Under the pieces are notes generated by a model. It saw only the letters and a list, made by a program, of their open reading frames with translations, did not search any database and was not told the origin of the DNA. Positions 1-42,446 of a stretch of 64,000 bases of DNA are shown here, piece after piece (position 1 is the stretch's first letter; every line of letters begins with the position of its first letter). This stretch comes from Marsupella aquatica (taxonomy: Eukaryota > Plantae > Marchantiophyta). A program made the translations under genes and the position numbers. Where the stretch lies: contig OZ316898.1 of assembly GCA_973895155.1 (NCBI GenBank), positions 11,989,187 to 12,053,186 on the forward strand, read 5' to 3'.

Positions 1-307
1 CTCTAGCTGTAGCCTCGCTCGGTGGTGTGGTCTAGCTATAGGCGTTCTTGTATACTAGGCTGCCACGTGTCATCTAAACGTTTGTGAGGCATTTTTCAAT
101 GACCACTTCCTCTAGTTCTGATGATTCTACTAGCACTTCTAGTTCTGGGTAGTCCCTGAACTTTGATTCTAGTAAAATCTTTGAGTATGATTCTCAAGAC
201 ACTTTACTAAAGATGTCGGTGGAATCTGCTTTGGCCGCCTCAAAGGGATTTCATATCACAGTTCCACGTAAGTATGATTCAACAATTGATGCAAGTTAGT
301 CTTTGAA

Positions 308-630
308 GGGTCGCTCCAGGAGCGACCCAACTTTGTTGTTGGTTGGACGTTGATTTAAGTTTTCCTAGGGTCGCTCCAGGAGCGACCCAACTTTGTTGTT
401 GGTTGGACGTTGATTTAAGTTTTCCTAGGGTCGCTCCAGGAGCGACCCAACTTTGTTGTTGGTTGGACCTTGATTTAAGTTTTCCTAGGGTCGCTCCAGG
501 AGCGACCCAACTTTGTTGTTGGTTGGACCTTGATTTAAGTTTTCCTAGGGTCGCTCTAGGAGCGACCCAACTTTGTTGTTGGTTGGACCTTGATTTAAGT
601 TTTCCTAGGGTCGCTCCAGGAGCGACCCAA
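308..630. repeat. 60-bp tandem array (~5.4 units, six palindromic cores) in intron 1
   Basis: Cores GGGTCGCTCCAGGAGCGACCC start at 308, 368, 428, 488, 548 and 608. Units are nearly identical; the copy at 548 has C>T. Confidence 0.97.
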
Positions 631-1689
631 CCCACATGTTTGTTGATGCAGACCTTGTCTCCAGCTCGCTCTAGGGGCGAGGCAACACAGAAGATCTCTT
701 GCTTTAATGTTTGTCATTTCAATTTGTTTTGCCAGGAGAACAACTTGGATCCCCAGAGTTAAATATTATGGCCGAGGATGTCAAGGACTTTATTTTCCCT
801 GGACAAGATAAGGCAGGATTCTCGTGGGCACTTGAAGTAGGGATCATGGAGAATGACTTGTCGATGATTTGTATCAAGGCAATCACTGCTGAGACAATGA
901 ACGACAAGAAGATAGTTGCGTTGGGCCCTGTGGTCCTTGTAAATTGCAGTGATAACCGCAATGTTACAATCATTATTGAATCCAGAGAAAGATCTCAGTG
1001 GATGAGACTTTACTTGCCAATCAAGATGTACTCGTCAATTATCAACGTGGAGTGGATAGCACGCTCGGAGGCTAGTATTTGTTCAATGGGATTTCTTCCA
1101 GATGGGTTCACTATAGAGGATGTTCTTGAGAGGCATGGAAGATTCAAATTGAGTGGGGTTGATGTTGTCTTTGGATTCCTCTCTGTGAAGCGGTACATGC
1201 ATGATCATCCGGACCTTATAGATCTTCCTAACACATGGGTTGTCCAGAGGATGATTGAAAGAGCACGCTTTTCATATGAGCAAGCAATTGATAAGAGTTT
1301 TATTTTCTCTGATGAGTTTGACGAAGATGCTTGCATGAAGTGGATTTCAACTCAAAAGAAGAAGGAAGAAAAGCATCGAGGTAAGGGGAAGATGAAGATG
1401 AAGGCCAAAGAAATGACGTCGGCTGAAACACAGAAGAAGAGAAAACAAAGAGAGCCAAGGAGTGAAGGAAGTACTAGAGGAAAAAAGGCGGCGTTGAAGG
1501 ACTCCGACAAGAAGCCCAAGAAGAAGGCCAAGATTGGAAAATCAAAGCCCGTGTCAGCGTCAAAAGCAAGGTTGGTCTTGGATCCGGAGGATGATACATG
1601 CCCAACAGATGCACCAGAGGAACGAGATGTATTGGAGGGGCAGAAAGCTTTGCAGAACATCGAGCAATACTACACTTTTGGAATCAGGG

Positions 1690-2110
1690 AGGTTTTTGAA
1701 ATCCCGGTTAAAAGTATTCTTCCGCCTACTGCAGTTTTTGTGTATCGGATGTTCAACCAGGCTCATGCCTTAGAGATAGCAAAATCAATGATGAAAAACC
1801 CTGGCCAGGAACCACATGTTGCAGATTTGATTCCATTTCTAGAGCGCACTAAGCAGTTGTTATATTTTGACAATACCGCACGCGATCAGAAGCAATTTTT
1901 GTTTGGTGTTAAGAAGCAAGAGATACAATTTCTTGCAATCAGTGGGCAACATTCCGCAAAGGCTGCACAATGGATTCAAGGGTGGGCAGACAAGGATGCC
2001 AAGCTAACTGATCTTGCTAGCAAACTCCAATATTGGAAAGCGAGGATCTTATCAGACCTCACTCCAAGGGCAATTTTGGTCGAGCACTCGAGCCTTTCAA
2101 ATGCAGTAAA
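1690..2110 (+). CDS. ParB/Sulfiredoxin-like N-terminal (CTPase/nuclease-fold) domain
   Basis: EIPVKSILPP...VYRMFNQAHALEIAKSM...FLAISGQHSAKAA follows the ParB/Srx layout (ipl..I.p...pR......l.eL..Si......yeiidGxxR..Aa; DGQHR-like). It is preceded by a Lys-rich, NLS-like linker. Confidence 0.6.
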
Positions 2111-3139
2111 TCAGACCATGTTGTTTAAGTCTTGTTTTCTAGAGACAGTTGTTCATGCGAGAAGGCAATTTGATGAATGTGGAAAACCACCGCGTCCAGG
2201 AATTGGAACAAACCAAAGTACAGACAACCAGAAATACCAGGTAAACATTTTCATTAGTTGGAACTGTAGTTTAATTTTGCCTCGCTCTTGGAGCGACCCA
2301 AATGAAATTGAATGATGAATACAATGATTGCCCCAACCATTTTCATATGGCTTTGTCATTTTCTTCGCCTCGCTCTAGGGGCGAGGCAGAGAAGTTGAAG
2401 TTTCTAAGTTTAAACATCTAACATGTTTTTTGGTGGATGAATGTAAATGCAAGATTGGTTTGCCCTCGCAAAGATAACAATGGGAAAGTCGAGCTTGAAA
2501 GCCATTTTTTGGTTGCTCTTTGCTGAGGATAAGCTTTTCCATTTATGGCAAACTGTTTGTTGGGATTGGTTGGCAGGGAAGCTCCTTGGCGGGGCAGGAG
2601 AGTATGGTGGGCCGCGGCCACTAAAGCTGGTCACGCCAACTCTTTTTAGATGTTTTGAAGGGGAGATCAGTTCTAAGGATATCATTGATATATTGACCGC
2701 GGTTTATGAGAAGAAAGCACTTCTCAAGAAAGATGCCTCCAACAAGATGGATCTGGTGTCAATGCCAGATATGGCTCATACCATCAAGGTAATGACTAAA
2801 TTGAAGCAAGTCATTGTTGAGTACTTTGTTGAGAAGCACAAGGAGAAGTTTCCCGGGGGGACATCGTGGGCTTCGGTGGTCAACATCATGCCGGCCTTGG
2901 GATCTCAACTTGAGTTGACAAAATTGTGAAGAGCAGCTGGGGAGGTCTACCTTAGCAGTTTATTAAGGAAGAACATTGTGAAGGAGGCTTTCCCTCAAAG
3001 TCTAATGGTGAGATTAGACGGGTTGTACTGCAAACAATTTGGTGGAGTTGGGCGCACACAAACAGAGCCTTTCTTGACATTCTTCAGTGAGAATCTAATG
3101 AAGACAACCACGCCAGAGTTATTGGAAGAGGCGACACCA

Positions 3140-3860
3140 ATGTGTCCACTTGCAATTGTTGATTTTAGTAGGGCACGACAACATGAATGGACAGATTCGG
3201 AAATTTCTGTATTGCTCCAATATATTGTGGAGTTGCCAAGGAATACAACCATTGTAGTTGTCATGACTACTCATCCAGGGCCACTTCCAGCCAACATCTT
3301 AAGTGCCCTAAGGAAATTAGGACATGAAAAGCATTTGGCCATCCATGTTGAATACGGGAGTTATGATCGGGAAGATCGCCCAAATCCGCAGGGCTTAATT
3401 TTTACAGGAGCGATTGAGCAGGTCATTTTTGCTGGAATTACAGGTGAAGACAATTTTGATTGGAATCAATTGTTTAAGCCAGAGTTCAATTCAAAATTTA
3501 GTTTTCACCCCGATGTTGACTATGATTTCAATATTGAAGTGAAGGCTGACAAGCAAGAGAAAAGCAAGGGAAAAGAGAATGAGACAGAGGAGCAGTCTCC
3601 CGCATTTGATATGGCAGATTTATTGCGGCAAGCTCCAATGTTTGAGATGGTCGGAAGTCGAGGAGGATTTGTCAATCCGCATGCCAAGCCCCGACACATG
3701 CTCAAAAATATTATTGAATGTTTTTCCGGTGAGGGGGAGACTGTCCTCGATTTTTTTTCAGGAGGGCAGGTTTTGAAGGTGGCCTTGTTGGCATACCGAG
3801 ATTGTTTTGTCTATTCAGACACTTTGCAAGAACACCATTTCACCCAAGCATATGCAAGGG
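3140..3860 (+). CDS. Beta-class amino (N6-adenine/N4-cytosine) DNA methyltransferase-like domain
   Basis: NPHAKPRHMLKNIIECFSGEGETVLDFFSGGQVLKVAL matches the motif X/I block HPxxKP..L...I...S..Gd.VLDpFxGsG. Upstream LAIVDFSR sits at the motif IV position (canonical DPPY absent) and AIEQVIFAG resembles motif VIII, giving the beta order. Confidence 0.7.
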
Positions 3861-5054
3861 TTTTGTGCAACAGGATTCCCTCCCTTATGAAAGAGCGGAT
3901 GGGAGTACATGGTCCTAGTAGAGCTCATCTAAGTGTTCTTTGTGGGCCTATGGACAACCCCCAACCGGGCCCTCAGCGAGTTGACCTTGAGGATGGTGAG
4001 TTGCAGCATGATGATGGAGGTTCAAGTCCTATGGTAGAGGAGGATTTTGGCGGAAATTGGGATGCTCGAGCAACAGAAATGGTTGGCATTACTACCTACG
4101 GTGTTGAAGGGCTACCTCAACTCGACATAGTGATGTCGGGTCGCCCTGAGAGCGACCCTCCATCAAATCCTCTCAACCCTGAAGTATCAAAATTGCATCC
4201 CGAGAGACCGCAGGTATCGTGCACATTGGATGCAGGTTGGCAGAATATTGGGGCCACTACACCCACCACGGACCTACAAGTTGGTATTGCAGAAGCGATT
4301 GAAGACAACCTTCCACTTGGAGAGACAACAAATGTTGAAGCTGAAGAGGCAGGTGCTTCAACTTGTTCCGAGTCTCCTCAATTTTGTTCGTCAGGGAATA
4401 AATTGGTCTTCACAAGGATGTCAAGCGGAAGCCCCATAATATTACGCTTGTCTCAAAAGTCTGGATCTGAGATAGGTAGAACAGGATATATGAAGACAGT
4501 CCGTCATGCAACTCATTTCATTTGGAGAAATGGACCTAAAGTTGGATTGAAAGAAACGTTGGAGGATGCGCCTAAGTTAATGGTCAAACCTGATTACATA
4601 ATAGACAAATTGAGATTGAGTCCAGTGTTTGCGCCGCCAACGTTGGTGGAGCAGCTTCCTGTTGGCGTCAATTCTGATATCCAAAGTGATCTAGGTGATA
4701 AAATGATAGATGAATATGGGTCATTTAGTAGTGGAGGTTAATATTATGGTTTTGTTCTTCTATTTTTCACAATAATCTAAAATATTATGTTTGGAAATCA
4801 TATATGGACAGACCAAAGTTTTGTCATAGCATCTCTTCCATCGAAGGATATTATTGGTCTACCTTTAGCAAGCGGTACCCTGGTCCAAGACAAAGCATTT
4901 GAGCAAGGTACTTCTACATTGATATATCAAAATGCTTTGACATTCAAAAATGATATGTTTGTTTTCCCCATTAGGTCGGGTCGATCCAGGTTCGACCCTA
5001 AGTTCTTCTTTTATATCTTTTAGATATAATTTTGATTCATTTGGATCTTTGCAG

Positions 5055-6139
5055 ATTTCACTCCTAAATTGCACTCTGATATAAGAAGAAAACTCTTGAT
5101 TTTGGACCTGAACAAAATTTGTTGGGATTGCGTCAAAACAAAAAGCTCGGGGCCGTTAAGATCTACAACAACTGTGCGGGGTGTGCATTGGGGGAGACGG
5201 GGCCCGAGACGGGGTGGATTCAATTTCATGTACGTGGAAAGGCCGGGGTTGCACCAATTTTTGGAGGTGGCTTTCAAAGGTTTTGATGTCGCATTGTGGA
5301 CTTGTGCGGGGAGGCCAAGAACTAATGAAATGATGAATTTGATTTTCAAAGAAGAGGAGCGGAGGCAATTTAAATTTGTTTTCACACAAGAAGATGCTTT
5401 TGATACTGGCATAAAAAGACCGGACGTAGCAGATGGGAAAGCAAATATTATGTTGAAGGATTTGCGTGTGGTGTGGAGTCGTTTTGGAGACAAGTATGAT
5501 GATACAAACACTCTACTTATTGATGACTCTCCAGTGAAGGCTTTTGCAAATCCACAGTATAGTGGTTTGTTCCCAACTCCCTTCTCACACATTGCCGAGA
5601 GTGACACTTTTCTACCAGAGATACTTTGGCCATTCCTTAGAAAATTGTGGAAGGCTTATGACATCCGACAATATATATCTGTCAACAATCCACTTTGGTC
5701 ATTTGTTAATATAAATGATGACCGTGAAAGTAATGCTGCAATCTATGATTTACTTTCCCATAAGTGGGGAAGTAAGATTTGGCGTTCCAAGATTGAGTAT
5801 ACCATCTTGGATGTCACTGGAGATGAGATATGTTGGGAAGTGAGGGATATGGTACAATCCTACCCTACATTTGAGAACCTGACCGAAGATGATATGAAAG
5901 ATGTGGTCAACAACTGTTTGGGCGAGTCTTATGCAGGTCCCTTCAGAGAAAATCCTCGCCGATTTGTCTGGGAAGTTCTAAAGACTAGGGATCTCACCTC
6001 TAAGTTTAAAAACCGTTATCCCAAAGACACTTGCACTCGTGACAGACTATATGACCCAAATGGAGAGCGACTCACTTGTTCAAATCAGTCATGTAGACAT
6101 ATTCATGGAGGCATAGAATTTGAAATTTTAGATGATTAA
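5055..6139 (+). CDS. FCP1/SCP (NLI-interacting-factor-like) HAD phosphatase domain, last exon
   Basis: LLILDLN (motif I variant), RPGLHQFL, VALWT, KDL, TLLIDDSPVK..NP are all NIF-family motifs. A C-terminal C...CSNQSCRHIH may be CCCH-like. Confidence 0.85.
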
Positions 6140-7251
6140 TCATTATGTTTCTGTACATTGTAGGACACAAGATTGGAGTCATGCAATCATTTTTCTATTT
6201 CACAGGTCATAGAACTACTTTGGACTTTACACTAGCTTGACCATTGGAGTAGGATCGACATTATGGCTAGCTAACCTTGAATATATGTTATGATAAATGA
6301 GATGATTAATCTCACTTTGAATTTAATCATGAGTTTTTGACCAAATGATACATGTTTGTCACTTATCTATTTAATTTCAAATACAATTAATATTAATAAT
6401 TTCTGTATTATGATTAATTGATTAAAATCAAATTTGGAGTGCAAAAGTGTAATTTTAAACCAAAAAGAGTGTATATTTAGTCTTGAAAAATTGTTTATTT
6501 GGAGCAAAATTAATGGACTTTTTAGAGACAAGAATGTAAATTTGAGGATCACAATCTGGACTTTTAAATTTCCAGTTTTAATGAATACTGTGATCTAATT
6601 TGAAAGCGTTAATAACTTAAGTTTAATGAGAGGAAAGGCTCAGTCTTGCATTCCAATAACTAATTCTTAAGGTTTTCTCATTTTTTGCAGGAGTGCCAAC
6701 TGCCACCTGGCAGAGAGGAATTTTATGTGCAAAATTGGCCACCTTAGTAAAAGTCTTATGGGATTTTCTAGATTGCCACTGGTTTTTGGCATAATATCCT
6801 CCTTGCTAGTGAATTTTTCCTATATATCACAGTGGTTTGTGGGCGACAAAAATTAACCCAGGTTAGCTTCCTCACATCTTATGGCTGTCATTGCATCCAG
6901 TTTTGCAATCGGGGCTTGGGTGGCAAGGAATGTGCAAGGGCTACATGGGACTTGGGTCCCAACAATTCCTTTCAGAAAAAGGGTAATTATTGCAAGGGGT
7001 TTGTTTCCCAGTAGGGGCCTGATCAAGTCTACTAAACCCACGTACTAGATGTTGGTACTTAACTCTAGACTAGCATCTGGTTAGATTAACTAGGGCACAA
7101 ATTAACTATGGTTAAGGGTTGCTGGGTTAGACTAGTGGAGAGGGGGTATACCCTTGTGAGAGCACTTCATTGTGCTCATACTTAGATATCATTTTTAGGA
7201 GTTGAGATTGAGAGAGAGACTAAGATTGTCATAGAGCACTTCATTGTGCTC

Positions 7252-7253
<2 letters not shown>

Positions 7254-7292
<39 letters not shown>
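7254..7292. repeat. (GA)n microsatellite
   Basis: ~19 GA units. Confidence 0.95.
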
Positions 7293-7296
<4 letters not shown>

Positions 7297-7577
7297 CATA
7301 GAGCAACTTGTGAGCTTGCTAGGTTATGAGTGGTGGACCCTGGGGAATCACTTAGAGTAAAACCCCTAAAACACGTGAGAACAAACCAATGAAATTTGAA
7401 AAAATAAATTCAATTAAAAATACCCTTGTACCCTTAATTATATGGCTTTGACACATTTTTAAATACCTTGCTGAATATAAAAACTAATATTTTTTCCAAA
7501 ATTGGATTTTTAAACGCCTTTAGTACAAATTTTTGATTATAATTATTATGCCAACAAGATTAAAAAGAACCTTCATT

Positions 7578-9480
7578 TGTTCGCACCCCGTTCTAATAAT
7601 CCAACGAGTGATTCCCCAGGGGTGGTGGACCTTGCCACCCACCGCCCTCACCAATCCCAACACCCACGCCTAAGTGTCTCTGGTGCCCGAACACCTCGAG
7701 CAAGCATTCAACCTAGTGCCCCTTGCACTGCCAGGCCCCTCCCATATGAAATCGCACTTGCTTGGGGGTCTCACTATATGGATGTCTCCCCCATCACCTG
7801 CGACATTTTTAGGCCTCGGACCCCCTAAAATGCAAGAATTTTTTGGAATATTCTTGGAATATTCTCAAATTTTGGTTAGAAAGACCCTAATGTTCTTATA
7901 AGTCTTAAAATTGGATTTAAAAGACCCTATTATTCTTCTGAGAAAATTCTTAAGTCTTCCCTTTAAACCAATAAAATAACCCTATCCTTCGTCGCACATG
8001 ATATGTCATTTTTGTGGAAGTGAAACCCCCAAGCGCACTTGTTCTCCAACACGACCGTTACTCAACGGTCCTCACTATCTGCACATGCAACCAAACATCT
8101 TGGTAAGTAACCCTTCAAGATCTAGATCTCCAAGTCTAGCATCCTAACTCAAGCTCAATAGACATTGGTAAGTAGGTCAGCGATAGGTCCTCTCGATGCC
8201 CTAAGCCAGACCCCTTTCAATGTCTGTTGTTTATCCAGAACAACTCCTTCTTGGGCGCGGCCCGGGTTCCCCTCATACCTATCCATCACCAACTGACCGC
8301 CCTGCCCCAAGGACATGCTCATGGTCCAAATATCGTAGCTTGTCTTAAACCTTGTCCTAACACGTCGGGACCAGAATAGCCCTGACTCTAGCGACCAACT
8401 CCCGGTTCTCGCCCAACTGATGGTCTAGGGGGAAAGTGCCCTTGGAACTCAACCTCCATGCCTACTCGGCCTTGCCTCCCCAACGCAAGCTCACTTGAGA
8501 GACTGAACGCGGTGTGGCTGCTGTTTTGGCAGAATTTGGTAAACGGGCGAGATAGCCCCCGCAAACCCCAAGAACCTATGGTCACCCTAGACTCAGCTGA
8601 GCTCAGGAGGATGTAGCCCTCCTTGAGAGCTTTCCAACGACCCAAGAAGTCCCCCAACGGACTTCTCCTTGGGAAGTTATCGTAGTTTTTGTTTGACGTT
8701 TTCCCTTAGTATCATGACCGTCGCGGCTCACAATTTTGGCTTGCCCTTAGCCTCCAGGGAGACACCACTCCCCTCATATATGCTTCTATAGACCTGCCAC
8801 CCCCAGACCAAATTTGGTTCCCAAATTTTGGCCCCCCACTTGGACCCCAACCGGGACCCCAACCGACATGTCTGAGCACGCCACCAAGTGGCAATGCTCA
8901 TAACTTTCAGGTAGGCATCCGCAAGCGGAGTGCCTTAGCCCGTTGTGATCGGGCCGATCCAGTGCTCATGCGTAGGCCCTCAGATCCCATCGTCGCTTGG
9001 GACCCCCAATCGGCCAAACCCGGATTGGGCCATAACTCGTGCCCCAAGTATCCGTTGCCCATGAAGTCAACTCCATTCGCCTCGGGCCCAAGAAGAGTTC
9101 TCATTCAAGCCCTTAGAACTCAAAGTCTGTCCGGGGGTCCGGACGGTTGACCTTGAGCCTGGCCCTTTCCCTCTTGACCCGACCAACCCTCAGCTAGTCT
9201 AAGTCTTTAGTGTGTGTCACCACCTTAGCGCCTTGCCTTCCCCAGTGCCACGCCCCATTGCCCATAAGTCTCCCTATGCTAAGTCCCCCTTGGATGGCCT
9301 ATCTGGGCCTGGACCATAAGGGAGCTTGGCATCGGAGTCAGCGACGCTAGAGCTAAGTGTTAAGGTAGTCGAGTAAGTTCCCAACACTAAAGAACAAATA
9401 TGCTAAGTTCAAGTCCAACCCTTAAGCCAATGTTACCAAAACCCACTAAAGAAAGAAAATCAAGAATTCAAGTTCAACCC
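7578..9480 (+). mobile_element. Putative LTR/solo-LTR-like non-coding segment
   Basis: Starts TGTTCGCAC, is GC-richer than its flanks and has no credible ORF. It shares AGTGATTCCCCAGGG with an inverted TGTTCTCAC terminus ending at 7383. Right boundary and TSD not identified. Confidence 0.35.
7761..8033 (+). mobile_element. hAT-type MITE, copy 1
   Basis: TIRs CTTGGGGGTCTCACT / AGTGAAACCCCCAAG; 8-bp TSD CGCACTTG at 7753-7760 and 8034-8041. Confidence 0.92.
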
Positions 9481-10076
9481 ATTCACTATAACTTACTCTT
9501 CTGGTTTATTTGTAACTAATCTTGATTTCACGTAGTGAGTTCTCTGGTTAGTGGATCTGTATATGGAAAATATTATACACTAGTTGACTCTCTAGTAGGT
9601 TGATTGGTTGCTTTTCAAGATTTTAAACTATGTTCACCAGTTGTTGAACTTGACTGTTTAGGAAATTATCCAGTGAGAGTTGAGGTTACATACAAATTAT
9701 CTTGGGAGGGTTGGGGCTATATATATACACTCAACTCGAAGGAGGACATTGTTAGGTTGGATATTTAGTGTATCAATAATCATCCAACCCAATGCTGAAG
9801 CCTACATGGGTGAGTGATAGCTCACTTGAGTAGAGACTCATAGATATTGGGTTCAAATGTCATAACTGGGTTCTATTGCCTCCCTTTTTGTGGAATTTCA
9901 CTGATTTTGAAAACACAATAGGGTTTACAATGCCCTAAGTCTAATAATGTATAATAAATTAATGTTCATTCAAGAGCTCAACAAATTTCTGTATTTGGGT
10001 GGCGTAGAGATGATTCTACAGTCGACCACTTACTTGTACTTAGTAACCCATACAGACCCGGATATACAGTAAGCTC

Positions 10077-10357
10077 GGGGGGTTGACTATCAAAATTTTA
10101 GGAACCACGTGCGATCTAAAATATATATTTTTGATAGAAATTAAATAAATTTTTCAAAAAGCATAGGAGGCAAAAGAAGGTATTATAAACTCATGTTCAT
10201 AGAATATTTTATAATATATACTTTTTATAAAGTAAAATAAATTATTAATATTAAAAATGGAGAATATTCTTGAGATATTTTATTTATAAAATAGATCTAT
10301 TTACATTAGGTTAGGATTACACGTGGTACCCCAAAATATACACTTAGCTAACTCCCC
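10077..10357. mobile_element. Degenerate MITE-like element, with part of it duplicated downstream (to ~10610)
   Basis: Imperfect inverted ends GGGG.TTGACTA...GGAACCACGTG / CACGTGGTACC...TAGCTAACTCCCC around an AT-rich interior; 10240-10430 is repeated at 10430-10610. Confidence 0.45.
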
Positions 10358-11009
10358 ACGGAGACAATAAGATAGTCAGTCATGAGTCCTCCTTGTTCCC
10401 ATGTTACACAACAAGCAACTGATACAGACCATATTATTAATATTAAAATGGAAAATATTTTTGGATATTTTATTTATTAAATTGATCTATTTACATTAAA
10501 CTAGGATCACACTTGATACCCCAAAATATATGTTTAAGTACACCCAAGATAATAAGAGAGTCAATCATGAGTCCTCCCATATTACCAAACGAGCAACTAA
10601 AACAGACCATATTATACATATTATACACTGCTACAATCAGGTCCAAAACTGTGGGAGACACCACCAACCAGCACTTACGCACACAAGACTAAAAGACACG
10701 TAACATCATTAATGGAGTTCTCTCTAATAAGTGTACTACAGGAAATCACTGATGCACTTCCCTGTTGTGTAGTTGGGTCACAAACATCAGATTTCTCCCA
10801 TGTCAAGCCCTCATATTGCACATTTGGATCTCATGAAATGAAAGAAAAAATGGGCAATCTTTTTTTTTTCAACCACATAGAAATGATAGAAAAAATATTT
10901 TGGAAGTACATGAAACTACTTTATGTAGTTATTTGTTACACTTATCAATACCTACTTTTGAGGTATAAATTGCAGTAAAATTTATAAATACATGTGTACA
11001 CTTGTAAAG

Positions 11010-11200
11010 GGAAATGCACTTATGAATCTTCTTTTAGTGAAGATTAACCTCCGCTGATGCAACATACACTTCTAAACCGAAATGCACTTATGTATCGTCG
11101 TTCAGTGAAGATTAACCTCCACCTGAGCAAAATACTCTTCTAAACCGAAAAATGCACTTATGTATAGTCCTTTATTGAAGATTGACCTCCACTTATGCAA
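11010..11200. repeat. ~70-bp tandem repeat x3
   Basis: AAATGCACTTATG...TGAAGATTAACCTCC recurs three times. Confidence 0.8.
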
Positions 11201-13543
11201 AACTGCACTTTTTTGTGTATTTACAAAGAGAATAATTGTAATATTAGGGGACCACTTGCTAATGCACTTATCCACTTGTCCTGTACGGTACGATAGGTGC
11301 CGTGCGGCCCGAAATCATGACAAAGAATGACGTAATAATGTAAGAGGTGCGGTCGTCGCTTCGCACCACCGCCTGGGCAATATTCAATTTAGCGATGGTG
11401 GCCAAGAATTCAACTAGACTTTGAGACTTTGAGACTTTCCGTCGTTCCTGACCTTTTGCGGTGGCACAATGTTCTGTCCGTAGTCGACGCTGAAAATCAT
11501 AAATCTGTAGAGTACTAACTTGCTGTATTTGACACGGAGTTGACGAGAACTGCTTTTAGGGGAATTGAGAAAGAATTTGAGATGGCTTGCAACGAGAGTA
11601 CGAGATGGCCTTTTCGGGGAAATCACGGGGCTGTTTCTTGGTTTGAGGCGAATCTGGTCCGAATCGACTGAAGGACTCTTTTGGCCTTTTGGGTTTGGAT
11701 TATTTAACAGTTTTGTAGATGTAAATGGCGAAAGGAGCAAAGGAGTACCGCGGATCTGAGGATCTGCCGAGCATTTGTTGCACACGTACCATCTGCCCGA
11801 GACCGCATTCTGTGAATCCGTGTGGAGTGGATCGCCTTCACTGTCTCCGGCGACCAGACGATTGTTGGAAAAGGTAATGGTGCTTGACCCTTGAGTCTAG
11901 CTTGGAGTTGTTTGTCCTCAGATGGCAAGATGCCGAATATATAGGGAGAATATGTCTACGGGCCCGCCGCACGATTAGCCTTTTCCCTATGCCTTTATTG
12001 AAAAGCTCTACACAAGCACTGTAGCCATTCAGAATCTGGACCATGGCTTCTTTGGGATGCAGTAGCAAGATATCGTTGTTGTTCCAGGGTTTTGAGCTGA
12101 CGTTATGAGGCCGAGGCCCCTTCAGCTGAACCACACTGCGGACTAGCCAGGTCTGGTATGATACATTGAACAGGGTGTCCAATTGATGTCGATGGCTCCA
12201 GGTTTAATCTTTTGCAGGAGCTAGACAGAAAGTGAGCGAGTGAGCTATAAGTCACAAGAATCACGACGATTACAGGGACCATAGAGGTTGCACTCGTGTA
12301 TCATATCTAGTGGTCAGCTTTTTTGAGATCTGGTTATCGAACTACGAGACCGTCGTGGACACGGGTGTTTATTATAGTGGAGAGCATTCGACAGGTATGT
12401 GCTGGTAAGTAGAAATGTGGAAGTCAGCAAGCAGCATCATCGGCAGCAAAATTGGTATCAGCGGCGGGGACAGGAGTGGGAGCTTCGGGCAGGAGATTAA
12501 AAATGTAAGTATGCTATCACAGGTCGTCAAGATTCCGGTGCACTGCGTCACTTCCATTGTTGGATCCACGTATCCGCTCATGTTCAGTATCTCCATTCAG
12601 AACGAACTGGCTTGGCTGGAGCTATGAACAATTAGGTTGAAAGATCATCGCACTGAAGATTAGTTCAGTAGGACTACTCCTTAGATAAATATGAGTTGAT
12701 TACACAAATTGCAGTCAAGTGGCTGCATCGATGGATATATAGCACGATATCGTTTTATCTCCCACAGATTGACCGATTGAACTTCTAGTCATCTAGAATT
12801 ATTGTCACCTCGTCACTCCAGTAAGTTCGAACTTTCGTCGAAATCTGCCCGACGATTCTGACATACTTCCCGAGTTGTCAGATGAAACCTCGCCAATGCT
12901 ATCTGTGTGTTAAATGCAATTGTCTCACAACGGGATTTATCATTTTGCGTAGCAGTCCAAGTTACTTTCTACAATTATTTGACTCTAAAGGTCGAGTCAA
13001 CAGCCGCGGGCAAGTTTCCTAGTTCACAATTTTCTTTGTACCGTACCCATGGCTGGGGCAAGACTATCCGTATTCGAAACATTAGCGGCAACTGGACCGC
13101 TCGGGAAGACCCGGGGGTTGCACAAGACAATCTTCTGCGCCAGGGGTATTGACAACGGCAAGTTCAGCGGTACAGATTCATGTTTTGGCGGTCAGGTTCA
13201 TCGAGAGGCTTGTACATAGTAGAGATGGGGCAAGTTGACTTTAGTATAGGTTTGTGGAAATGAAGAGCTTAAACAGATATCGGGTTGCAATCTGTATGCT
13301 ACAGCCTCCAGGGTCCATTGCGAGCACCGTCTGGAAATGTGCGGACGTTATAGCTCTCGGACGGTAGGACTAGGCACATTGTTCCATCTTCGCAAAAACC
13401 ATCGGTTGATCTGAAATTTGATCAGTCTGGGAGAACAGTACGTGGCTTTAGTTAGATAAGCTAATCGTGTCATCTGCTTTATTCCCGTGAAACTTACGTC
13501 AGTTTCGGAATTCCTGCAGGGCCGTAGCGACCTTACCGGGCAG

Positions 13544-16500
13544 ATGCAACAGGACTCGGATTCGATCCGACAGCTTTGGAAAACCGCAATGGACGGCGTT
13601 GAGTCTTCAGCATGGGAAGGTAAATCGCTTAAAAGATTAGGTTTCCTTACACTTGTACTGTAGTCTTTGAATCCGCTCTCAATTGGAATCCATCGTAATG
13701 ATCAGATTAATTTGCTCTCATTGAATTTGTGCAGTTGGTCTACTTCTTTCCTCCTCGCACTAGTTAGTTACTAGACACAATCCTACTCGAGGGATTCGTG
13801 AGTGGTCAATCCAATACAATCATACCATACTGCTATCCATCATGAATGGTACAACTTTGGGTGGACTCCGAACGGCTATGAATTCTTCAATTCTCTATCA
13901 CATCCGCAATTCCGCACCTACATCTTATCTTGTTCGTTCACGAGTCGATAATCTACCGGAGAACATATTGCTCGTTAGTAGAGCCTGGGATTGAAACTCT
14001 CATCAGCAACATATCAGGGACAGAAATTTACTTTCTTTGTTTACTCATCTACTTCAGATAGGGGAAAATATTGTTACTTCCTCTGTTTTCTGATCAAACC
14101 GTCCTTGTGGTCTCTATAGATATCAACGAGGAACAGTTGCTTACGCCCCGCACGAGCATTACCAGCAATACCAGTTCCTCGAGTTCGTTTAGTTCACCGA
14201 TAGCACGGCAGGGTGGGAAGCTCCTCCAGGTGGTCAAGAGCAAAGTAAACTTTTCAAGGGGCGCCAGGAAAGCATCTCAAAGGGATCATGTTTCGGTCAC
14301 TGATGCCAAGGATTCTAGCCATAGTAGAAACAGCAGGACACAAGATGGGGAGATTGTCTCTGATAAGCTTATGGAGGAGCTCGAAACGCTCCAACGGAAA
14401 TTAGAGACGAAGGAAAAGGAGATGCAGAAACTCAACAATGAGGTATGGAAATCTTACAGACGGCTATTACAGTTATTAAAGTTGAGCCCTACTAGGTCAC
14501 TAGGCTTTAAATGTAGGTGAGCAAATCTTTGAGAAAAGAAATCGCTGTCAGCCTCAGCTAGCCTCTAATTAGGAACGTTAAACGCAGGTGTCCACATTGC
14601 GAATAATAACAGCCATCCGGAGCGTCCAGCCAGAATCTCAGTCGGAGGCACAGATAAGTCCTCAGGATGACAGCAGCCGCCGTTATTCCGCCGATTCGGA
14701 CTCCTCCCAGTTGTCATGTCTGGATTTTTCATTTGCCCCCTCCACTGGCGATCTCAAGTTCGAAGGCAAGATCAAGTATGCTCCTTCATAACTCTCGCCG
14801 TTATTCCGCAAGTATGATTTTTAAAAAGTTTTCGCAGTGCTACGGTAACTGACTTGCGGCATTGAGGGTTACAATGTCATTATCCGACGAATCAACTGGA
14901 GTAAATTTACACCTCACACTCTCAGAATCATACTTAGCTTCGAATGATGCTATAATTGTCACAAGCGATTGGTGATGTCTATCACTTTGACCATGTCTCT
15001 TTTAGACGACGTGGACAGTTCAATATAAATTCCCAAGGGAGAAAATGCTACACTCCAGAACCGGGAGCATAGTTAACTTAACTAGACAAACATGAGAACA
15101 ACAAACATGATTTCGAACGTTTGGGGTTTAAGGTGCTACCACTACATCCGGTCAAATGTTTGTTCCTCACACTAGCTGTTCTGCTCGAGGAATACAGGGC
15201 ACTAGGGCAGTTTCCGGACTATTGTCCTGCACTTGGGACTATTGTGGCGCTTGATGAGGCTTCTATTTCAGGGAGTGAGCGGATAGCATTGTGTTCCTAA
15301 CCTCAGGCTGTAATTTACCATAGAATCCTGGCTCTGCATTGTAGCATTCCTTTTCCAAGTCTTTCAGAGTGGGCTGTGTCGGTTGCAATGGATAAACGCT
15401 CGAAGTTCTGGTGACGGAGAATCTATGAAGTGTCGTTGTAATAAAATTAAATAATTAACAGTTCACCCTCGTTTTGTGCTATCGCTCAGGACGAAAATTA
15501 TTTCTTCTACACCTGAGATGGAGAGTGGAGATCAGCCGGACTCAATCCTTTCAGATAGTGCAGCACTTGGCGCTCCTCGTCTTGAAAAGCTGTCTCCTAT
15601 CAACGAAGTTTCTGCACCAGAGGAGGTACGGAGTACAACGAAAGGTAGTGCATCGTCACGAGTGCACGAGCTGGACGTTGTTCACAAGGATGTCGAGGAA
15701 TTGCCTGAAAAAACCGTAGAGGAGCTTCATATTTCCACTCAAAGCTATGTTTATAAAACTAAAGAAGAGTTCTTCGATATGAACCCCAATGAATCACGGT
15801 CCCCACCAAAGAGTACCAGCAGCACCGAAGAGGAGGACGAATTCGAATTTCCGGTATTGTTTCCAGACTCAAATAACTCGCTCACCCTGCAGAGGGCCAT
15901 TCCATCGAAGGTGGGCGAGTGCGTCTTAGCCGCGGGATTCTCTTGTGATCTTTCCGATGTCGAGGTTGACGACAAATCCCGCCCCACAATGATGAAGGAT
16001 TGTGAGGAGGTGGGTGAGAACGTTCTGACAGTCCCATTCGGCAATAGTTCACCAGCGAAAGAGGATCCATTAAAGATGCTCATGAATTCATGTGTGATGC
16101 TCGAAGTTGACAAGCTTTCAAAGACCACGACGAGTTTACGAAAAGAGGAGTCCTTAACAAGGGCAAAACATCCTGATCTCATCACTAAGCCCACACCTGT
16201 AATTTCACCTCGACGAAGGAGAGAGGAGTCACTAACGACCACAAAACATTCTGATCTCATCTCGAGGTCAACATCTGTGCTTTCACCCGCACGCTCACGA
16301 CCAGTGGCAGCTCAGGCTTATTCTAATCGTGGAGTGCGCGTCTCTCGGGAACCTTTTGACTTGCAGGTGAAAGCAGGGGATTCCGTGGGACAGACTGAAA
16401 CAGAGGAATTCTCATCCAATAGGACAGAGATCGACCTGGGATCGAAAATCTTGTCGATATCGACGTCTACGACTGAGGCGTCAATAGAGCCGATTGCCGG

Positions 16501-17326
16501 TTTAAATGGCTTAAATTTTGATAAACTGCCACGGCCAAAAAGCCACAGGACGAGCGGCTATCGTTCAAAGAGTCCCCAGTCCAGCGAATCCACCTCAACG
16601 ATCGCAGATCGCCGCGAAGGTTGGTCACTTGTCTTGCCATCTACATCTCGAAGAGCCACGACGACCGGTGATCGAAACGGAGGTCCGTCCCCTATTTCGC
16701 CATCTACATCTCCGAGGGTCCGAGAGCTTCCACTGTCCACGTATGCTGCTGGATCCCAACAACATGAAGAGTTTGGGTGGAAACCGAATCCTGGCAGGTT
16801 ACAGGAAATAGATCTGGAAGAGGAAGTGCGACAGATTCTTGAGCAATCAAGGCTGCTTCTGATGTCTGACGAGACCTTCAGCGAGGATGGACGTAGTGCT
16901 CCAGGGCCTGTGTCTAGAGATAAACCATTTAGTGTCTTGGCTCTTTCTCGTCATAGGAGAAGCATCGAGAAAAGCAGAACCGCATTTCGACATACTCCAG
17001 AGAAAAATCAGCAGCAGGATCGGCCTGGGCAGGAACAGGAGGAGGCGATGGTGCTCTATGGTGACGCTGACGCATGGAACATTCAATCTAGCAAAGTCGA
17101 TCATTTCCGCGAAGTAGATGCGGGAAAGGATAACGGAAATCATTCTCTCAGCCACCCTCCTGAGCTGCCTAATGCTGTGGAAGCATCCAACAGGAAGGAT
17201 GATCTCCAGCTAGTTTGGGAACTGGAGGTTCAAAACAGTAAAAATCAAATATTGTCTGAGTCCGTTCCTCGCAGATCCAGATTTTTCTTTGAGGCCAGTA
17301 TCGGAAAGGCCCAGGAACTGGTATGA
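13544..17326 (+). CDS. Spliced plant gene, uncharacterised Ser-rich/disordered protein with a short coiled coil
   Basis: Phase-compatible exons 13544-13619, 14120-14442, 14588-14775, 15490-17326 with GT-AG introns; coiled coil LMEELETLQRKLETKEKEMQKLNNEV; 612-codon last exon. Start and exon 3 boundary are uncertain. Confidence 0.7.
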
Positions 17327-18384
17327 GTGCTTCAACAAGCTCTTTGAGGAAACGCCTTCATTTGCAAGGGACTGGTTTCTACAAATTTCAACTAGTTGAC
17401 ATATTACGGTCTTCCAGGTACGAGGCTTTCGGTGTGGGTGCTTTGAAATCATTATCAGATTTGCAGAGTAGTTGAATTTATAATCCATCTCTTAAGATCT
17501 GGAGAACTTCCTGTCCACAGAGAGAGAGAGATAGATCTATCGGCTTACAGAAAGAATGGACAGTTCCTCGCTAGAGAGTTCGCGAAAAGTTCTAGTTCTT
17601 CACATGTCAATGTCAATGTCCAGCATTAATCCTTTGTACATTAGGGGAGTCTTGAGCGATTGAGACTCAGCACAAATCCTTTAAACATTTAAGCAATAGG
17701 GAGTGGCTTGAAGCATTTTTAACTTCTGTTGTACACAAGATCATAGCAACTGGTTAGTTGTCAAAGGTGCAGAAACAGATAGCTATTTGGTTTGACATCG
17801 AACTGTAGCTAAGCGCTAGTTTTTGATCCACGACGGTATCGTATACTTTAGTGAACACTGATATGTCACGGATCGTGTAATCTCCAAATGGTTATCCGTA
17901 TCGGAAAGACCGTGTCCTGGTGACCATACCACTCACCAATTTTTTTGGACAAGAAAAGTCGATGCCCCCATCAAGTCTCGTTGTGAGCTTCCATTTTTTC
18001 TTTGGACAAGAAAAGTCATTGGTGCCCAAATGTTGTTGTGAACTTGCCCTAAGATTCAATTACAAACTGCTCCCTATAATTGTCATGTTGGAGAGGCTGG
18101 CTTAACTTATCTTTTGGACAAATCGACGCATGACCGCAGTGGCCTAGCTTGAATCTCTGTGTCCAGAGAATGAACTTGTCTCGATTGGCTTCAAAGGATG
18201 TTTCTAGTGCAGTAGTAGTGTACTAACCGTCTCCAAATCTTATGCCGACCAGAAGACCCTCAGGCGGAGGACTGGATTCTAGCTTGAAACAGATAACTTT
18301 GACTCTCTGCACATCCCCAGGAAACCATTTCATTTTGGTCATCTCCTCAACTTCGTGCTAGAGAGTCACAGCTAGCTAAACCCT

Positions 18385-18580
18385 AAACCTATCCTCTTCC
18401 TAGCTACATCTTCGAGTACTTCGGACAAACTTTCGTGATCAAATCCAGTTCCCAAGATCCGTGTATCCTCCAGTCGACGGGTCCTTCTGTCTTATGTATC
18501 CTCTTCCTAGCCTCATCTTCGAGTATTTCAGACAAACTTCGTGATCAAACCCTGTTCCCAAGATCCGTGTATCCTTTTTG
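18385..18580. repeat. ~110-bp direct tandem duplication
   Basis: TATCCTCTTCCTAGC..CATCTTCGAGTA..TC.GACAAACTT.CGTGATCAAA...GTTCCCAAGATCCGTGTATCCT occurs twice. Confidence 0.8.
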
Positions 18581-21035
18581 ACCGTCTTGCAGGAATTTGA
18601 TTCCTTCCCAGTTTCTGTGGAGATACATTTCCCATATCCTGTGAATGATGTATAGTACTTCACATACCGTTTAATTAATTTGCATCCTCAACTTCTGGTT
18701 CCAAACGAGTGCCTGAGATCTCCGATTGATGTAATCTTCGGAAAGTCTTGCAACCGTGGAACTTGTGATCTACAACCTCAAATGTCCTACTGACTCGCGC
18801 GACATGCGATAAAGGAGGAACTACACTTGAAGAACTTTCCAACAATTTCAATCCCAAGCTCGAGAGTAATTGTCACACACGATAATCTAACAGGGTGTCA
18901 ATTGTAAACGTACGACGGACAAACTCGATCAATCACTAGGTCCATCTCATCAAAATGTCCCAAGATAGTCTTTGATTGAAGGACACAAATGTCTGAATCT
19001 GATAATTCAGGTAAAAGCATTCGGTGCTTGCAAACGACGGGTTATTAAAAAGAAAACCTGATAAAGCCTTGAAACGCACTCTACGATGCTTATGTTCCAA
19101 ACTTTTCGCGCCTCACCGTCTCTAAAGAGCAGGCTTCCTGTTAGGAAAACCCCTCATCTTAAGCTCGGAACGAAGGCACTCAATGCAGACCAAAAGTTAA
19201 AGAAATAATCATAAAACTGAATACCAGTCCAAACCAACGATGTCGTCAAAGGGCCAGTCGAATGGAAACCTCAGACACCGTATCTTCTAAGAAATGCGAA
19301 ACTTCTCAATCAACTTGCTTCGCATGCCAGTTTGCAAGTTCACCAGTTTAAGACAATTTTCTGGCAGCGGCCGTCGACAAGAATGTTTTCAATACTCCTG
19401 CCGTGACTTGGAGCAGTATGTTTGGCTACAGAAATATTGTACAAGGTCTTTCAAGATTCAAGATTGTACAGCCGTACGAGAAAGCACATTGTCTTGAATG
19501 ACGTCGGTGTCGTGAAGAATGTCTCCCATTCTGCCTTGGCTGTTGACTGTGATCCATGAAGGTCATTACGTCCACTGTGAAGGTAATGATTCTCTAAACT
19601 TCTCCCTCAGGTCGACGTCCACTGTGAGGGTCGTGATTCTCTGAACTTCTGCAGCGAGTCCACGCAGTCGGAAAAATAGATGACAGCAGTATCCGAGTAA
19701 GCACCTGCTGTATTGCCCTAAACACTTCCACGTACAACCTTCAATTCACGTCAATTTATTGCACATGTCAGCATGATTTGGTTTTGAGAACTTCTGCATG
19801 ATGTGGAGACCTTGTCAGGAACAGATCCGGCTTACTCTACTAGGGGGTGTCAAACAATTCCCGGCAACCTACTAAGGATGTCCCATTGTAGGTTCGGGCG
19901 GGAAGAGGTGATGATCCTTAAGCATCGGTATAATTCAGAATGGGATTTCATACACAGTAGTAATTGAAAACTCGAGGACTGGTATCAAGGACATGCGCGC
20001 ACGTTCCACCATGCTCATCGCTAAAAATGTTCCATACGATCTCTAGCTATGTCTCTTTGACATGTGGGAGGGACGTGTGTGCTTGTGGCTTGGATGATGT
20101 GGAAGCAAGGCACACAAGTATAATTGAACCAAACACTCTTCTCTGAGCCAGTAATTTTCTCGAACTGCAAGTCTTCAGAACCATCTACAAGCAGAACAAA
20201 TGCTTGCGTCCGATAGTAAAGTCGATCTTCAGTTTTCATAGCAAAATCGTAATCGTTTACAATAATCAAGTGACGTTGCCTGCATGGCTAACTGGTCCAT
20301 CTCCTTTCCCTGTCAATTGTCGAGAGCCTGCTCTTCTCCGGATCCTCAACAGCGCGCCATTACGGTAATTGAAAGTCACCAACGACTTAATGTATATAGC
20401 TACAGAGTTTTGTCTTTAGCGCGCGACCTGTGAAAATCTTGGCTGCTGCCTTCTTGATCTCGGAATTCAGAAGTCGTGTCGCTGCCGAGGCCAGCAGCAG
20501 CGTCTCTTGAGGCTGAGGAAGTCTCCTCATCAGACTCGCAAATTGTGATCGATTCTTTGACTGCGTACCACAGTTTGCGGACGTAAAGACGCGTGTATAT
20601 CTCCAGATCTAACAGCACGAGAGAAATGCAATGCAGCCTCGGCGCTGGTAAACTCACGATACTCAACCTAGTCGCATCATATTGCTCTGCTGCTCCAAGG
20701 CTCCACTTCTTCTCTGAAGCTCGACGTATTCGACCGCAGCTGGTCCAACTTTCTGATCGCAGCAGAAGCTCGCCGGCAGTTCTTGATCCGCTATTTCCAA
20801 ACAAGATGCCCGCACCGGTGACGAAATCCACGCAATCTCGAGCCTTCTTCGTCCTCATCTCTCAACAGATTTCTGCGTTAATATTCTGCCTCCCTCGCTC
20901 CGGACCGATCGCACGAGCTGCAAGAAATTGCAATCCCTTCCTGTCTGTTGGATGACAATACAGGAGTACAGGACCATTTCTTTACCATACACGATGACAA
21001 TACAGCAGTACAGGACCATTTCTTTACCATACAAG

Positions 21036-37232: not shown

Positions 37233-38408
37233 TTAAACGCGGGATCGCAGCGACGGCTTGAAGACGAAAAATTGGTCCACAGATGATAGCCCATTAGCTA
37301 GGAAACGGCACTCGGGAAGCGCGCTCCAAAAGTTCTTAGAAGAATTGTAGACGAGTACAACCGACCCATCATAGGTAGAAACATAAATAGCGTCCCCATG
37401 AGCAGCACATTTTAGAGAATCATATGCACCACACTTGTAGCTCAAGTACTTCTCACACAGCTCTTGTGGGACAGTGGAGATCTCCTTCCAGCTCACCACC
37501 GACTCGTCTAGCTTCCATATCTTGAGCGCCGTTGGTTCAGGCGTCTCTCCTTCTTTCCAGCATGGATCGAACCCAGCCACCATCGCAAGAGTACCCATAC
37601 TATCAACCAAATGCGGATACACAGCAAAGCTGGGCAGGCCAGCTGAGAATTCACTCCACTCACAGCCACCCTCGACCAGCTCCAGCTTCAGAACCTTCGA
37701 GGGCAAGCAGGTGATAGCGTATAGACACTCATTTATGATCACTCCGTCGGACTCAAATCCGGTCACTTCTGATGGGACCCTTCCGCTCGTATACCACGAT
37801 CTTGTGAACGAATCAAAAACCTTTGTGCTCAAGTCAGTCAAGCCATTGAAGCCAGCCTCGATGATCTTATACCTGCCTCCTTGCTGAAAGCCTGGATTTC
37901 GAGAAATAGCCATGGAAGTTAAAGTCCCAGCTGACACCATCTTCATACTCTTCTCTACGTCGATAATAGGAGGCAATTCCCTCCAGGTCTTGGTCAAGGG
38001 ATTGCAAGTGAGATAGATTGTGGTGCTGGCGACTGTGGCGTGGAGATATAGTAGACCTCCGGCGCACGCAATGACGGAGATGTCGACCATTTCTGAAGGC
38101 AAGAAGCGCAGCGACAATTCATTCCACTTGCTCAGTCCCACATTGAAGACATGGACAGTGGGACTCGGGTGAGACCCGACTGTGGTGAGGCAGAGAAGAC
38201 ACGACTCAGGCCGAGAGGAAGAAAAACCCGGAAGTACTTCCGGCGATCCCCGAGCAGCAGATAGCCATGAGTTCCATCGCTTGCAAACACAACGAAATCG
38301 CAGAAGATCTGGAATGGGCAAGAATGCAAGGAGCTTTTCGATGATGTCTTCTGGTAGTCCGCTCCAGAGCCTCTCATCCATCCCTCTGTAACCTCGCTGA
38401 AAACTCAT
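37233..38408 (-). CDS. Intronless F-box protein, F-box/kelch-repeat (SKIP-like) type
   Basis: N-terminal F-box LWSGLPEDIIEKLLAFLPIPDLLRFRCVCKRWN; GGLL...CNPLTKTWRELPP and VFDS.TRSW propeller motifs; C-terminal FVFKPSL typical of plant F-box/kelch proteins. Confidence 0.92.
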   Translation of the reverse strand: MSFQRGYRGMDERLWSGLPEDIIEKLLAFLPIPDLLRFRCVCKRWNSWLSAARGSPEVLPGFSSSRPESCLLCLTTVGSHPSPTVHVFNVGLSKWNELSLRFLPSEMVDISVIACAGGLLYLHATVASTTIYLTCNPLTKTWRELPPIIDVEKSMKMVSAGTLTSMAISRNPGFQQGGRYKIIEAGFNGLTDLSTKVFDSFTRSWYTSGRVPSEVTGFESDGVIINECLYAITCLPSKVLKLELVEGGCEWSEFSAGLPSFAVYPHLVDSMGTLAMVAGFDPCWKEGETPEPTALKIWKLDESVVSWKEISTVPQELCEKYLSYKCGAYDSLKCAAHGDAIYVSTYDGSVVLVYNSSKNFWSALPECRFLANGLSSVDQFFVFKPSLRSRV

Positions 38409-41866: not shown

Positions 41867-42446
41867 TGCCGCTAGGAGAGGGGCTCCTTCCGCCGGGGTG
41901 ACCCTCAGATCCCCCCCCCCCTTTCCCCCTTAACGGGATTTTCGTGTGGGTTGTTGGCCCCGGGCTCTTCATCCTTGGTTCTCCTCTTTCGGTGCTCCTC
42001 GTACTGCTGGCTTTGGCCCTTTGGGGGCTGTTTTCCGGGCCCCTCGGTTCTGTTTGGGGGGGAGGTCTTGGTGCTTGGGAGCCTTCTCTGCTGGTTGGAT
42101 TTCTGCTCCAGCCTGGTGACTGGCCCTGGCCTGGCCCGGGGTCTGGCGCTTTTTGTCCTGGCTCTGTGCCGGGGTTGGTTCGTGACCTGGGGGAGCACGT
42201 TGTGGTGTGGCTTCTTGGTGTTCTATCCGGAGGGGGTGCCTCCGCGACAGCTTCCTTTGCGCGGGGCTGCGGCGGTCCTTTACGACATGCGGTTGTTGTC
42301 ACTACCGGGTCGAGGTTCTTTGCTTTGGTCATCCATCCTTTGCTTTTGTTTTTGTTGTCGCTTTCGTAATATTTTCTGTTTGTTTTTGTTTGACTTGCCT
42401 ACTTTATATGTTTCTTCGTTATCCTTGTTTTATATTTTCATTTCTC

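Follow-up and report, generated by a model that had tools for sequence, protein, structure and literature searches.

We describe here the first part of a 64,000-nt stretch of DNA from the liverwort Marsupella aquatica (contig OZ316898.1; the whole stretch is called the window, and all positions refer to it), in which a ParB-like and methylase-like gene, hereafter gene A, is followed by a unit of the FCP1/SCP phosphatase type (hereafter the NIF unit, after its Pfam family), both of them apparently the cargo of a DNA transposon. Five open reading frames (ORFs) occupy this region on the plus strand, at 711-2315 (534 amino acids, aa), 2447-2929, 2978-4741 (587 aa), 4787-5023, and 5069-6139 (356 aa); the last four (2447-6139) share one frame, with single stops or brief runs rich in stops between them. 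An earlier, sequence-only reading of this DNA had joined the five ORFs (711-6139) and a short first exon into a single gene fusing ParB-like, methyltransferase-like and RNA polymerase II C-terminal domain (CTD) phosphatase-like domains. The ORF positions and the arithmetic of the resulting frame of ~1,713 codons hold, and the proposed domain order is supported as well, with the ParB-like region being recognized by resemblance only. Searches were carried out with the separate exons rather than with the joined spliced model.

The ParB-like and methylase-like parts are read, from sequence comparison, as one gene of 1,320 codons (exons 99-267, 736-2240, and 2453-4741), because the annotated Calypogeia fissa protein P0016 contains the same Q|D junction (...SKFQ|DWQVLAKIT) and because an intron-free ORF of 1009 aa (P0185) on a metagenome contig (L010) spans the ParB-like region, the equivalent of 2447-2929, and the methylase-like part. 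In Calypogeia and in Logan contigs, one ORF of 826-914 aa likewise spans the counterparts of 2447-2929 and 2978-4741. The two introns that the sequence-only reading had placed within this gene (Table 1) are of the GT-AG type and phase-matched, the CAA acceptor of the second being a private lesion of this copy. Homologous ORFs begin with an acceptor-like FV(L/F)A string, and similarity among 11 homologues of ORF 711-2315 breaks off exactly at K(Y/F)Q|V, that is, at the CAG|GT of 2240|2241. The gene ends in DEYGSFSSGG followed by a stop (TAA, 4739-4741). A counterpart of exon 1 was not traced in loci L001 or L003.

The copy number of this DNA and the history of this particular copy were assessed against the contigs of four public runs that contain the stretch (X1, X2, and X4 among them), which cover 150-6140 at a word depth of 300-3000. 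The three lesions that had been described as the only breaks in the proposed frame (TAG at 150, the CAA acceptor at 2452, and TGA at 2927) are present exactly as described; all three are transitions private to this copy, with C, G, and C, respectively, in most copies (Table 1). At position 150, the C occurs in contigs of runs X1, X2, and X4, which are loose ends finishing in ...GGGC. Of the 27 differences from run X1, 18 are C:G>T:A changes on the side of the window copy, and the overall divergence of the window copy from the run contigs is ~0.45%, which fits a young insertion that is decaying under cytosine methylation. Two joints in the run contigs were considered as splice junctions and set aside, as their ends are not intron-like and they resemble deletion derivatives. 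The first (3013>3731, in contigs of X1 and X4) skips 717 nt with ends TT..GT and probably represents an internally deleted sub-family of the element; the second joins 4691>5044.

The module is found well beyond the window. The order of ORF1-like, methylase-like, and NIF coding regions is kept in eight other loci, from Calypogeia, Riccia, and metagenome contigs, at 25-51% protein identity, and in Calypogeia and Riccia the copies are spread over several chromosomes. ORFs with DUF7869 and Transposase_23 domains adjoin the module in L001 and L008, whereas the flanks themselves are not conserved, the flanking ORFs of L001, L008, and L009 having no counterpart in the window. Thus, high copy number, relatives on several chromosomes, neighboring transposase-type genes, and unconserved flanks point to the module being cargo of a high-copy mobile element, which may be of the Sola1 type, as the DUF7869 ORFs beside the relatives suggest. 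The suggestion that the gene is transposon cargo, made initially from the letters of the window, is borne out by the word depth, the multi-copy relatives, and the transposase-type ORFs next to those relatives. The left part of the element would lie upstream of position 1, so that the window starts inside or just beside it, and the 3' flank (6140-6600) would plausibly still lie within the repeat.

The methylase-like core of gene A (~nt 3128-3880) was compared both by profile and by predicted structure. In Pfam searches of ORF 2978-4741, N6_N4_Mtase scored 25.8 bits, below the gathering cut-off of 26.7 and confined to profile positions 113-205, and its relatives scored 17-25 bits. The core of the AlphaFold2 model of 2978-4741 has a predicted local confidence (pLDDT) of 60-84, and a Foldseek search of the Protein Data Bank (PDB) with this core gave 68 matches at E<=0.001. 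The top matches were all beta-class enzymes (M.MboIIA, CcrM, M.BceJIV, M.RsrI, the rotifer N4CMT, and M.PvuII), at E 7.5e-7 to 1e-5, probability 1.0, and 250-285 aligned columns. The family profile also matched M.RsrI (E 1.4e-5), with NPHAKP...VLDFFSGG aligned to HPTQKP...VLDFFAGS; the S-adenosylmethionine (SAM)-binding motif I and NPxAKP are kept across the family. The modeled core therefore indicates that a beta-class DNA amino-methyltransferase fold is present, and the bacterial-type ancestry read into this segment earlier is upheld at the level of fold (best Foldseek E 7.5e-7, probability 1.0).

The activity of this fold is another matter. The motif IV tetrapeptide of amino-methyltransferases holds the target base. 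In the liverwort protein, DPPY is absent, the strand LAIVD62 being followed by F-S-R (DFSR), and the relatives read DFGR, DFTR, or DLAR at the same place. Because motif IV is of this DFSR type throughout the family, the active DNA modification proposed from the sequence alone is doubtful, and canonical amino-methylation by this protein appears unlikely. Compared with the bacterial and phage beta-class enzymes (M.RsrI, CcrM, M.MboIIA), gene A has the same fold, the same permuted arrangement with motif IV ahead of motif I, the (H/N)P..KP motif, and DFF.G, but it differs in its replaced DPPY, its introns, its additional N- and C-terminal domains, and its score below the Pfam threshold. These bacterial and phage relatives include ParB-methylase fusions; the phage methylases that we fetched as candidates for such fusions were short stand-alone methylases.

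Upstream of the methylase-like core, the region at ~nt 1611-2240 is, judging from its conserved motifs, probably ParB-like. It carries an invariant FLAISGQHSAxAA, reminiscent of yeLIaGeRRxrAA or DGQHR, and two further boxes, IPVxxI..YR..N and LxIAxSM..NPGxEPxVADLIP, that recall ParB in our own reading. The ParB/Srx assignment given to this region by the sequence-only reading was not confirmed, as neither a profile match nor a usable structure could be obtained. Pfam gave no match for ORF 711-2315, and a DndB match (E 0.052) appeared in one of 11 relatives. Alignment of the region with E. coli YbdM by hhalign gave a probability of 0.3%, a query of the Atlas with P0011 had no return, and a PDB profile search, Foldseek, VIA-wide, and tblastn of phages yielded no usable support for the ParB call.

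As a lead only, the ESM features of aa 300-511 of ORF 711-2315 placed this segment near DUF3723 (0.94-0.95) and a ParB_N cluster (0.91, rank 13). The nearest named clusters are thus the fungal DUF3723, without sequence-profile support. DUF3723 is a conserved accessory gene of the Starship giant transposons of fungi, and the giant transposons of fungi, algae, and plants may have ParB-type accessory proteins in common. The ~200-aa domain at the N-terminus of the same ORF (aa 16-225, window 736-1400) is conserved and confidently modeled (pLDDT ~85) as a beta-barrel with helices, for which only weak PH/PTB/SANTA-like matches (Z ~5) were found.

The introns contain a repeated palindrome. A 60-bp tandem array in intron 1 (307-631, 5.4 copies) includes six copies of a 21-bp palindrome, GGGTCGCTCC-A-GGAGCGACCC, and degenerate palindromes occur at 2279-2299 and 2367-2388 in intron 2 and at 4978-4998 in the intron before the NIF exon. 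In total, the palindrome has nine matches in 64 kb, where none is expected by chance, and all of them fall inside 308-4998. Calypogeia fissa locus L001 contains arrays of a different palindrome, GCCTCGAGA...TCTCGAGGC, over 7106-16765: before the ORF1-like exon, in intron 2, in the gap that separates the NIF part from the methylase-like part, and as far as the Transposase_23/DUF7869 ORF at 16983-19924. One small exon of L001 reads through palindromes.

The NIF unit was identified by profile. ORF 5069-6139 matched Pfam NIF over profile positions 1-160 of 160 (59.4 bits against a cut-off of 21.8, E 4.6e-16), in agreement with the FCP1/SCP-type HAD domain named by the sequence-only reading. Its closest solved relative is UBLCP1 (family profile E 5e-14), and CTDNEP1 was also matched. 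In motif I, LILDLNKI aligns with LVLDIDYT of UBLCP1 and LVLDLDET of CTDNEP1; the first Asp is kept, whereas throughout the transposon copies the acid/base Asp is Asn and the Thr is Ile or Val. Most transposon copies read DLNK(I/V) and two read DCNG; in the Riccia copies, motif I is D-V-E-G. Motifs III and IV are kept, with K130 (lKDL) and D152-D153 (LIDDSP) near-invariant, and the unit ends in a Cys-rich tail, C..RD...G..LTCSN..C. Because DxDxT reads DLNKI, the CTD phosphatase activity that had been read into the unit is doubtful as judged from these motifs. Relative to the FCP1, SCP, UBLCP1, and CTDNEP1 phosphatases, with which it shares motifs III and IV and a NIF score far above the Pfam threshold, the liverwort unit is distinguished by D-L-N-K-I in place of D-x-D-x-T, by its Cys-rich C-terminal tail, by its transposon-borne setting, and by the lack of a BRCT or ubiquitin-like domain.

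Whether the NIF unit is fused to gene A was examined at the end of the methylase-like ORF. If the gene were a constitutive fusion, the ParB-like, methylase-like, and NIF parts would be joined into ~1,713 codons through introns at 4737-4811 and 4908-5054, an arrangement that we regard as unlikely. All phases do match in this model, both introns are multiples of three, and the NIF exon and the small exons upstream of it always have phase-1 boundaries. In addition, an in-frame ATG for the NIF unit is missing from L005, L007, and L010, the methylase-like ORF of both L007 and L010 has a candidate phase-1 donor close to its end, and the Riccia annotations P0087 and P0134 join both domains. However, in the window and seven other loci, a stop 2-10 codons past a conserved (D/N)E(Y/F)G(S/T)F closes the methylase-like ORF (the comparison comprised the window, L001, L002/L005, which read alike, L003, and L004, and later L006 and L010); the tails after this motif differ among loci and have no GT donor in common. 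The exception is L007, in which the tail of the methylase-like ORF lacks the motif. Most copies share TAA 4739 with the window, no variant of it being listed in the run contigs.

The signals that the fusion would need are weak as well. The proposed donor GGAG|GTTAAT and the acceptor atatatggacag|AC (4737-4811; acceptor end ggacag) are unlike those of the other introns, the acceptor being purine-rich, and a local tblastn with the 32-codon mini-exon between them and the next donor, including the split-codon base 4736 to hold the frame, found no similar sequence in the other loci. The Calypogeia model P0003 ends at the stop, and the Riccia models are unreliable. Those two Riccia sorocarpa models were rejected as evidence for a fusion, P0087 skipping 2.5 kb and P0134 leaving the phosphatase motif I, RKLLILDVEG, in an "intron," the placement found in the public model KAL3694600.1 (L009, ~12330-12500). 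Thus, because a conserved stop ends the methylase-like gene and no conserved donor precedes it, the single triple-fusion gene of the sequence-only reading is unsupported; for the NIF unit, a separate product or one made by alternative splicing is likelier than a constitutive fusion.

As a separate gene, the NIF unit would begin at ATG 4787 and comprise 402 codons. An in-frame ATG upstream of the NIF exon is present in the window (4787), L001, L004, and L006; at every locus inspected, the acceptor of the main NIF exon (cag|AT or cag|GT) is in phase 1, and between one and three small exons, ending in AAG|GTA in phase 1, lie upstream of this exon in L001, L005, L006, and L010. The alternative is a single transcription unit with two products, in which exon 1 joins either exon 2 or the acceptors at 4812 or 5055, in the manner of TnpA and TnpD of En/Spm. 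Phase 1 is shared by the donor at 267/268, the acceptors at 736, 4812, and 5055, and the NIF exon acceptor wherever it was examined; only 45-290 nt separate the stop of gene A from the NIF unit, and several copies have no ATG for it. This is, however, an argument from phase, in which each site matches by chance one time in three, and exon 1 could not be followed into the other loci tried (L001 and L003), so that we rate this arrangement, too, as rather unlikely.

The interpretation that we favor, with a probability of roughly 0.72, is that positions 1 to ~6600 are the cargo half of one young copy, inactivated by mutation, of a liverwort DNA transposon family present in high copy number, encoding gene A and a separately made NIF unit with binding or regulatory roles. 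The gene A product would consist of an N-terminal beta-barrel, a probable ParB-like DNA-binding region, a methyltransferase fold without DPPY, and a C-terminal domain, and would terminate at a real stop; the NIF unit (4787/4812-4907 plus 5055-6139) would be expressed through alternative splicing or from a start of its own at ATG 4787. The ParB-like part would recognize the element's own 21-bp palindromes, amplified in its introns as putative sites; the putative recognition site, GGGTCGCTCCAGGAGCGACCC, is distinct from the Calypogeia palindrome. The methylase-shaped module, with its SAM-binding motif kept, and its phosphatase-like partner would act as binding or regulatory modules rather than as working enzymes, and may help the element's own transposition or expression.

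Several observations weigh against this interpretation. No transposase, terminal inverted repeat, or target site duplication was found in the 64-kb window. The window protein has no ParB match in Pfam, PHROGs, NCBIfam, or PADLOC, and the AlphaFold2 model of aa 300-510, built from an 11-sequence alignment, has a pLDDT of 30-59 and is uninformative for fold searches. A simple stand-alone phosphatase gene is at odds with L005, L007, and L010, which lack an in-frame ATG ahead of the NIF exon. Furthermore, no splice junction was directly observed: all four runs consist of DNA contigs, as judged from their being colinear through every proposed intron at word depths of 300-3000.

A more elaborate form of this scheme, which is speculative and which we consider distinctly unlikely, would treat the module as a self-recognition kit: a shared first exon would be alternatively spliced, the ParB-like protein would load on the intron palindromes, and the D-x-N partner would clamp a phospho-protein, such as the RNA polymerase II CTD, to drive or protect transcription of the element, with the ParB-like part possibly related to DUF3723. 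Were that kinship true, ParB-type accessory proteins would be a shared feature of giant eukaryotic transposons.

Two other explanations fare worse. Active self-marking, in which the ParB domain would bind the palindromes and the protein would deposit N6-methyladenine or N4-methylcytosine on the element, draws on the retained fold and SAM-binding motif I (DFFSGG) and on the prediction of such activity for the homologue-like Ectocarpus protein (PMC12477816); it is improbable given that every member compared reads D-F-(S/G/T)-R or D-L-A-R at motif IV, and that the Pfam match is limited to part of the profile and lies below the gathering cut-off. A host gene, domesticated or native, would account for protein-level conservation across liverworts and for the real introns, but it is very improbable given that word depth reaches hundreds in DNA runs of small size, that there are many copies with little difference between them, that the inactivating mutations are private, and that copies are scattered over the chromosomes of two other species with unconserved flanks.

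The closest published counterparts of the cargo-module interpretation come from algae. In Ectocarpus, the element Sola1-1_Ec32 carries a 1104-aa gene with ParB-like and N4C/N6A-methyltransferase domains opposite its transposase, and the proposal made there is that this accessory protein binds and marks the element that encodes it (Genome Biol 2025, PMC12477816). The two cargoes are likened by description, not by sequence; unlike what was proposed for the alga, the liverwort family lacks motif IV, so that methylation is doubtful, its phosphatase partner is unreported for the alga, and its transposase lies outside the window. In the red algae Bostrychia and Chondrus, Plavaka elements contain the PAG2 and PAG3 genes, ParB-oxygenase and N6-methylase-SET fusions situated beside inverted-repeat arrays, for which self-binding was also proposed (bioRxiv 10.1101/2025.02.11.637652). 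The likeness consists of a ParB-like domain fused to a nucleic-acid-modifying fold, with tandem inverted repeats adjoining the gene; the difference is that Plavaka, which belongs to another transposon superfamily, pairs ParB with a 2-oxoglutarate oxygenase in one fusion and the N6-methylase with SET in a different gene. A NIF partner and land plants go unmentioned in both papers (PMC12477816; 10.1101/2025.02.11.637652), and a literature search on ParB, transposons, and liverworts found nothing relevant.

The core ParB-methylase architecture is therefore already published for algal transposons, and the liverwort family is a land-plant variant of it. The sequence-only reading had considered its fusion unrecognized, which does not apply to the ParB-methylase part (known from Ectocarpus Sola1, with related red-algal forms) and does apply to the adjacent phosphatase unit, unmentioned in those studies. 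Transposons with their own DNA-recognition or chromatin-type accessory proteins have become a recent theme, exemplified by algal Sola1 and Plavaka, fungal KDZ/TET elements, and Starships; the liverwort family extends this theme to land plants and adds a phosphatase-like partner and lineage-specific palindromes. That both "enzymes" are without canonical catalytic residues argues for binding or regulatory roles over self-methylation. The VANC anti-silencing proteins of Arabidopsis VANDAL elements (Mutator) are also transposon-encoded and recognize short motifs amplified in their own element; this likeness is one of concept, the proteins being unrelated and no sequence or fold link having been found. 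The copy described here is dead and incomplete, and its value is that of a well-resolved example, with exact exon borders, the mutations private to it, and a check on the proposed fusion.

Table 1. Features of the transposon cargo module and the lesions of this copy.
Feature	Position	Strand	Description
Gene A exon 1	99-267	+	ATG 99; Ser-rich; 56 codons + 1 base; phase-1 donor CAC|GTAAGT
Intron 1	268-735	+	Phase 1; CAC|GTAAGT ... ttttgccag|G, strong signals
Gene A exon 2	736-2240	+	N-terminal beta-barrel + helices, Lys-rich linker, ParB-like region (~1611-2240)
Intron 2	2241-2452	+	Phase 0; CAG|GTAAAC ... tgcaA|GATTGG
Gene A exon 3	2453-4741	+	Helical segment, methyltransferase-like core, acidic disordered linker, C-terminal domain
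Small upstream phosphatase exon	4787-4907	+	In-frame ATG 4787; proposed acceptor 4811/4812; strong phase-1 donor CAAG|GTACTT 4907/4908
Intron before NIF exon	4908-5054	+	147 nt, contains stops; acceptor ggatctttgcag|AT, phase 1
Main NIF/FCP1-like HAD exon	5055-6139	+	LILDLNKI, KDL, LIDDSP, Cys-rich tail; stop TAA 6137-6139
3' flank	6140-6600	+	X1 contig extends 432 nt beyond 6140; weak similarity to Calypogeia locus at 6368-6595
Lesion, stop	150		This copy T (stop TAG, 150-152); most copies C (CAG)
Lesion, acceptor	2452		This copy A (acceptor CAA); most copies G (acceptor CAG)
Lesion, stop	2927		This copy T (stop TGA, 2927-2929); most copies C (CGA)

Elsewhere in the window, a Helitron remnant lies at 57360-60581 on the plus strand, with a Helitron_like_N match (E 1.7e-20) followed by an ORF of a PIF1-type helicase (E 3e-23) and then by a 172-aa ORF. 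An intact-looking 391-aa ORF with an F-box and a KIB1-4/Kelch-type beta-propeller (37233-38408, minus strand) is probably a host gene. The segment at 42000-46000 has a GC content of 0.53-0.59, a strong AT skew (-0.29 to -0.51), and overlapping ORFs; it matches RVT_1 weakly at 42652-43869 and probably represents a fragment of a retroelement. A 616-aa ORF at 15476-17326 on the plus strand has no Pfam match and is unlike the flanks of the related loci, and a 68-bp tandem repeat occupies 10997-11210 (3.1 copies, 83% matches).

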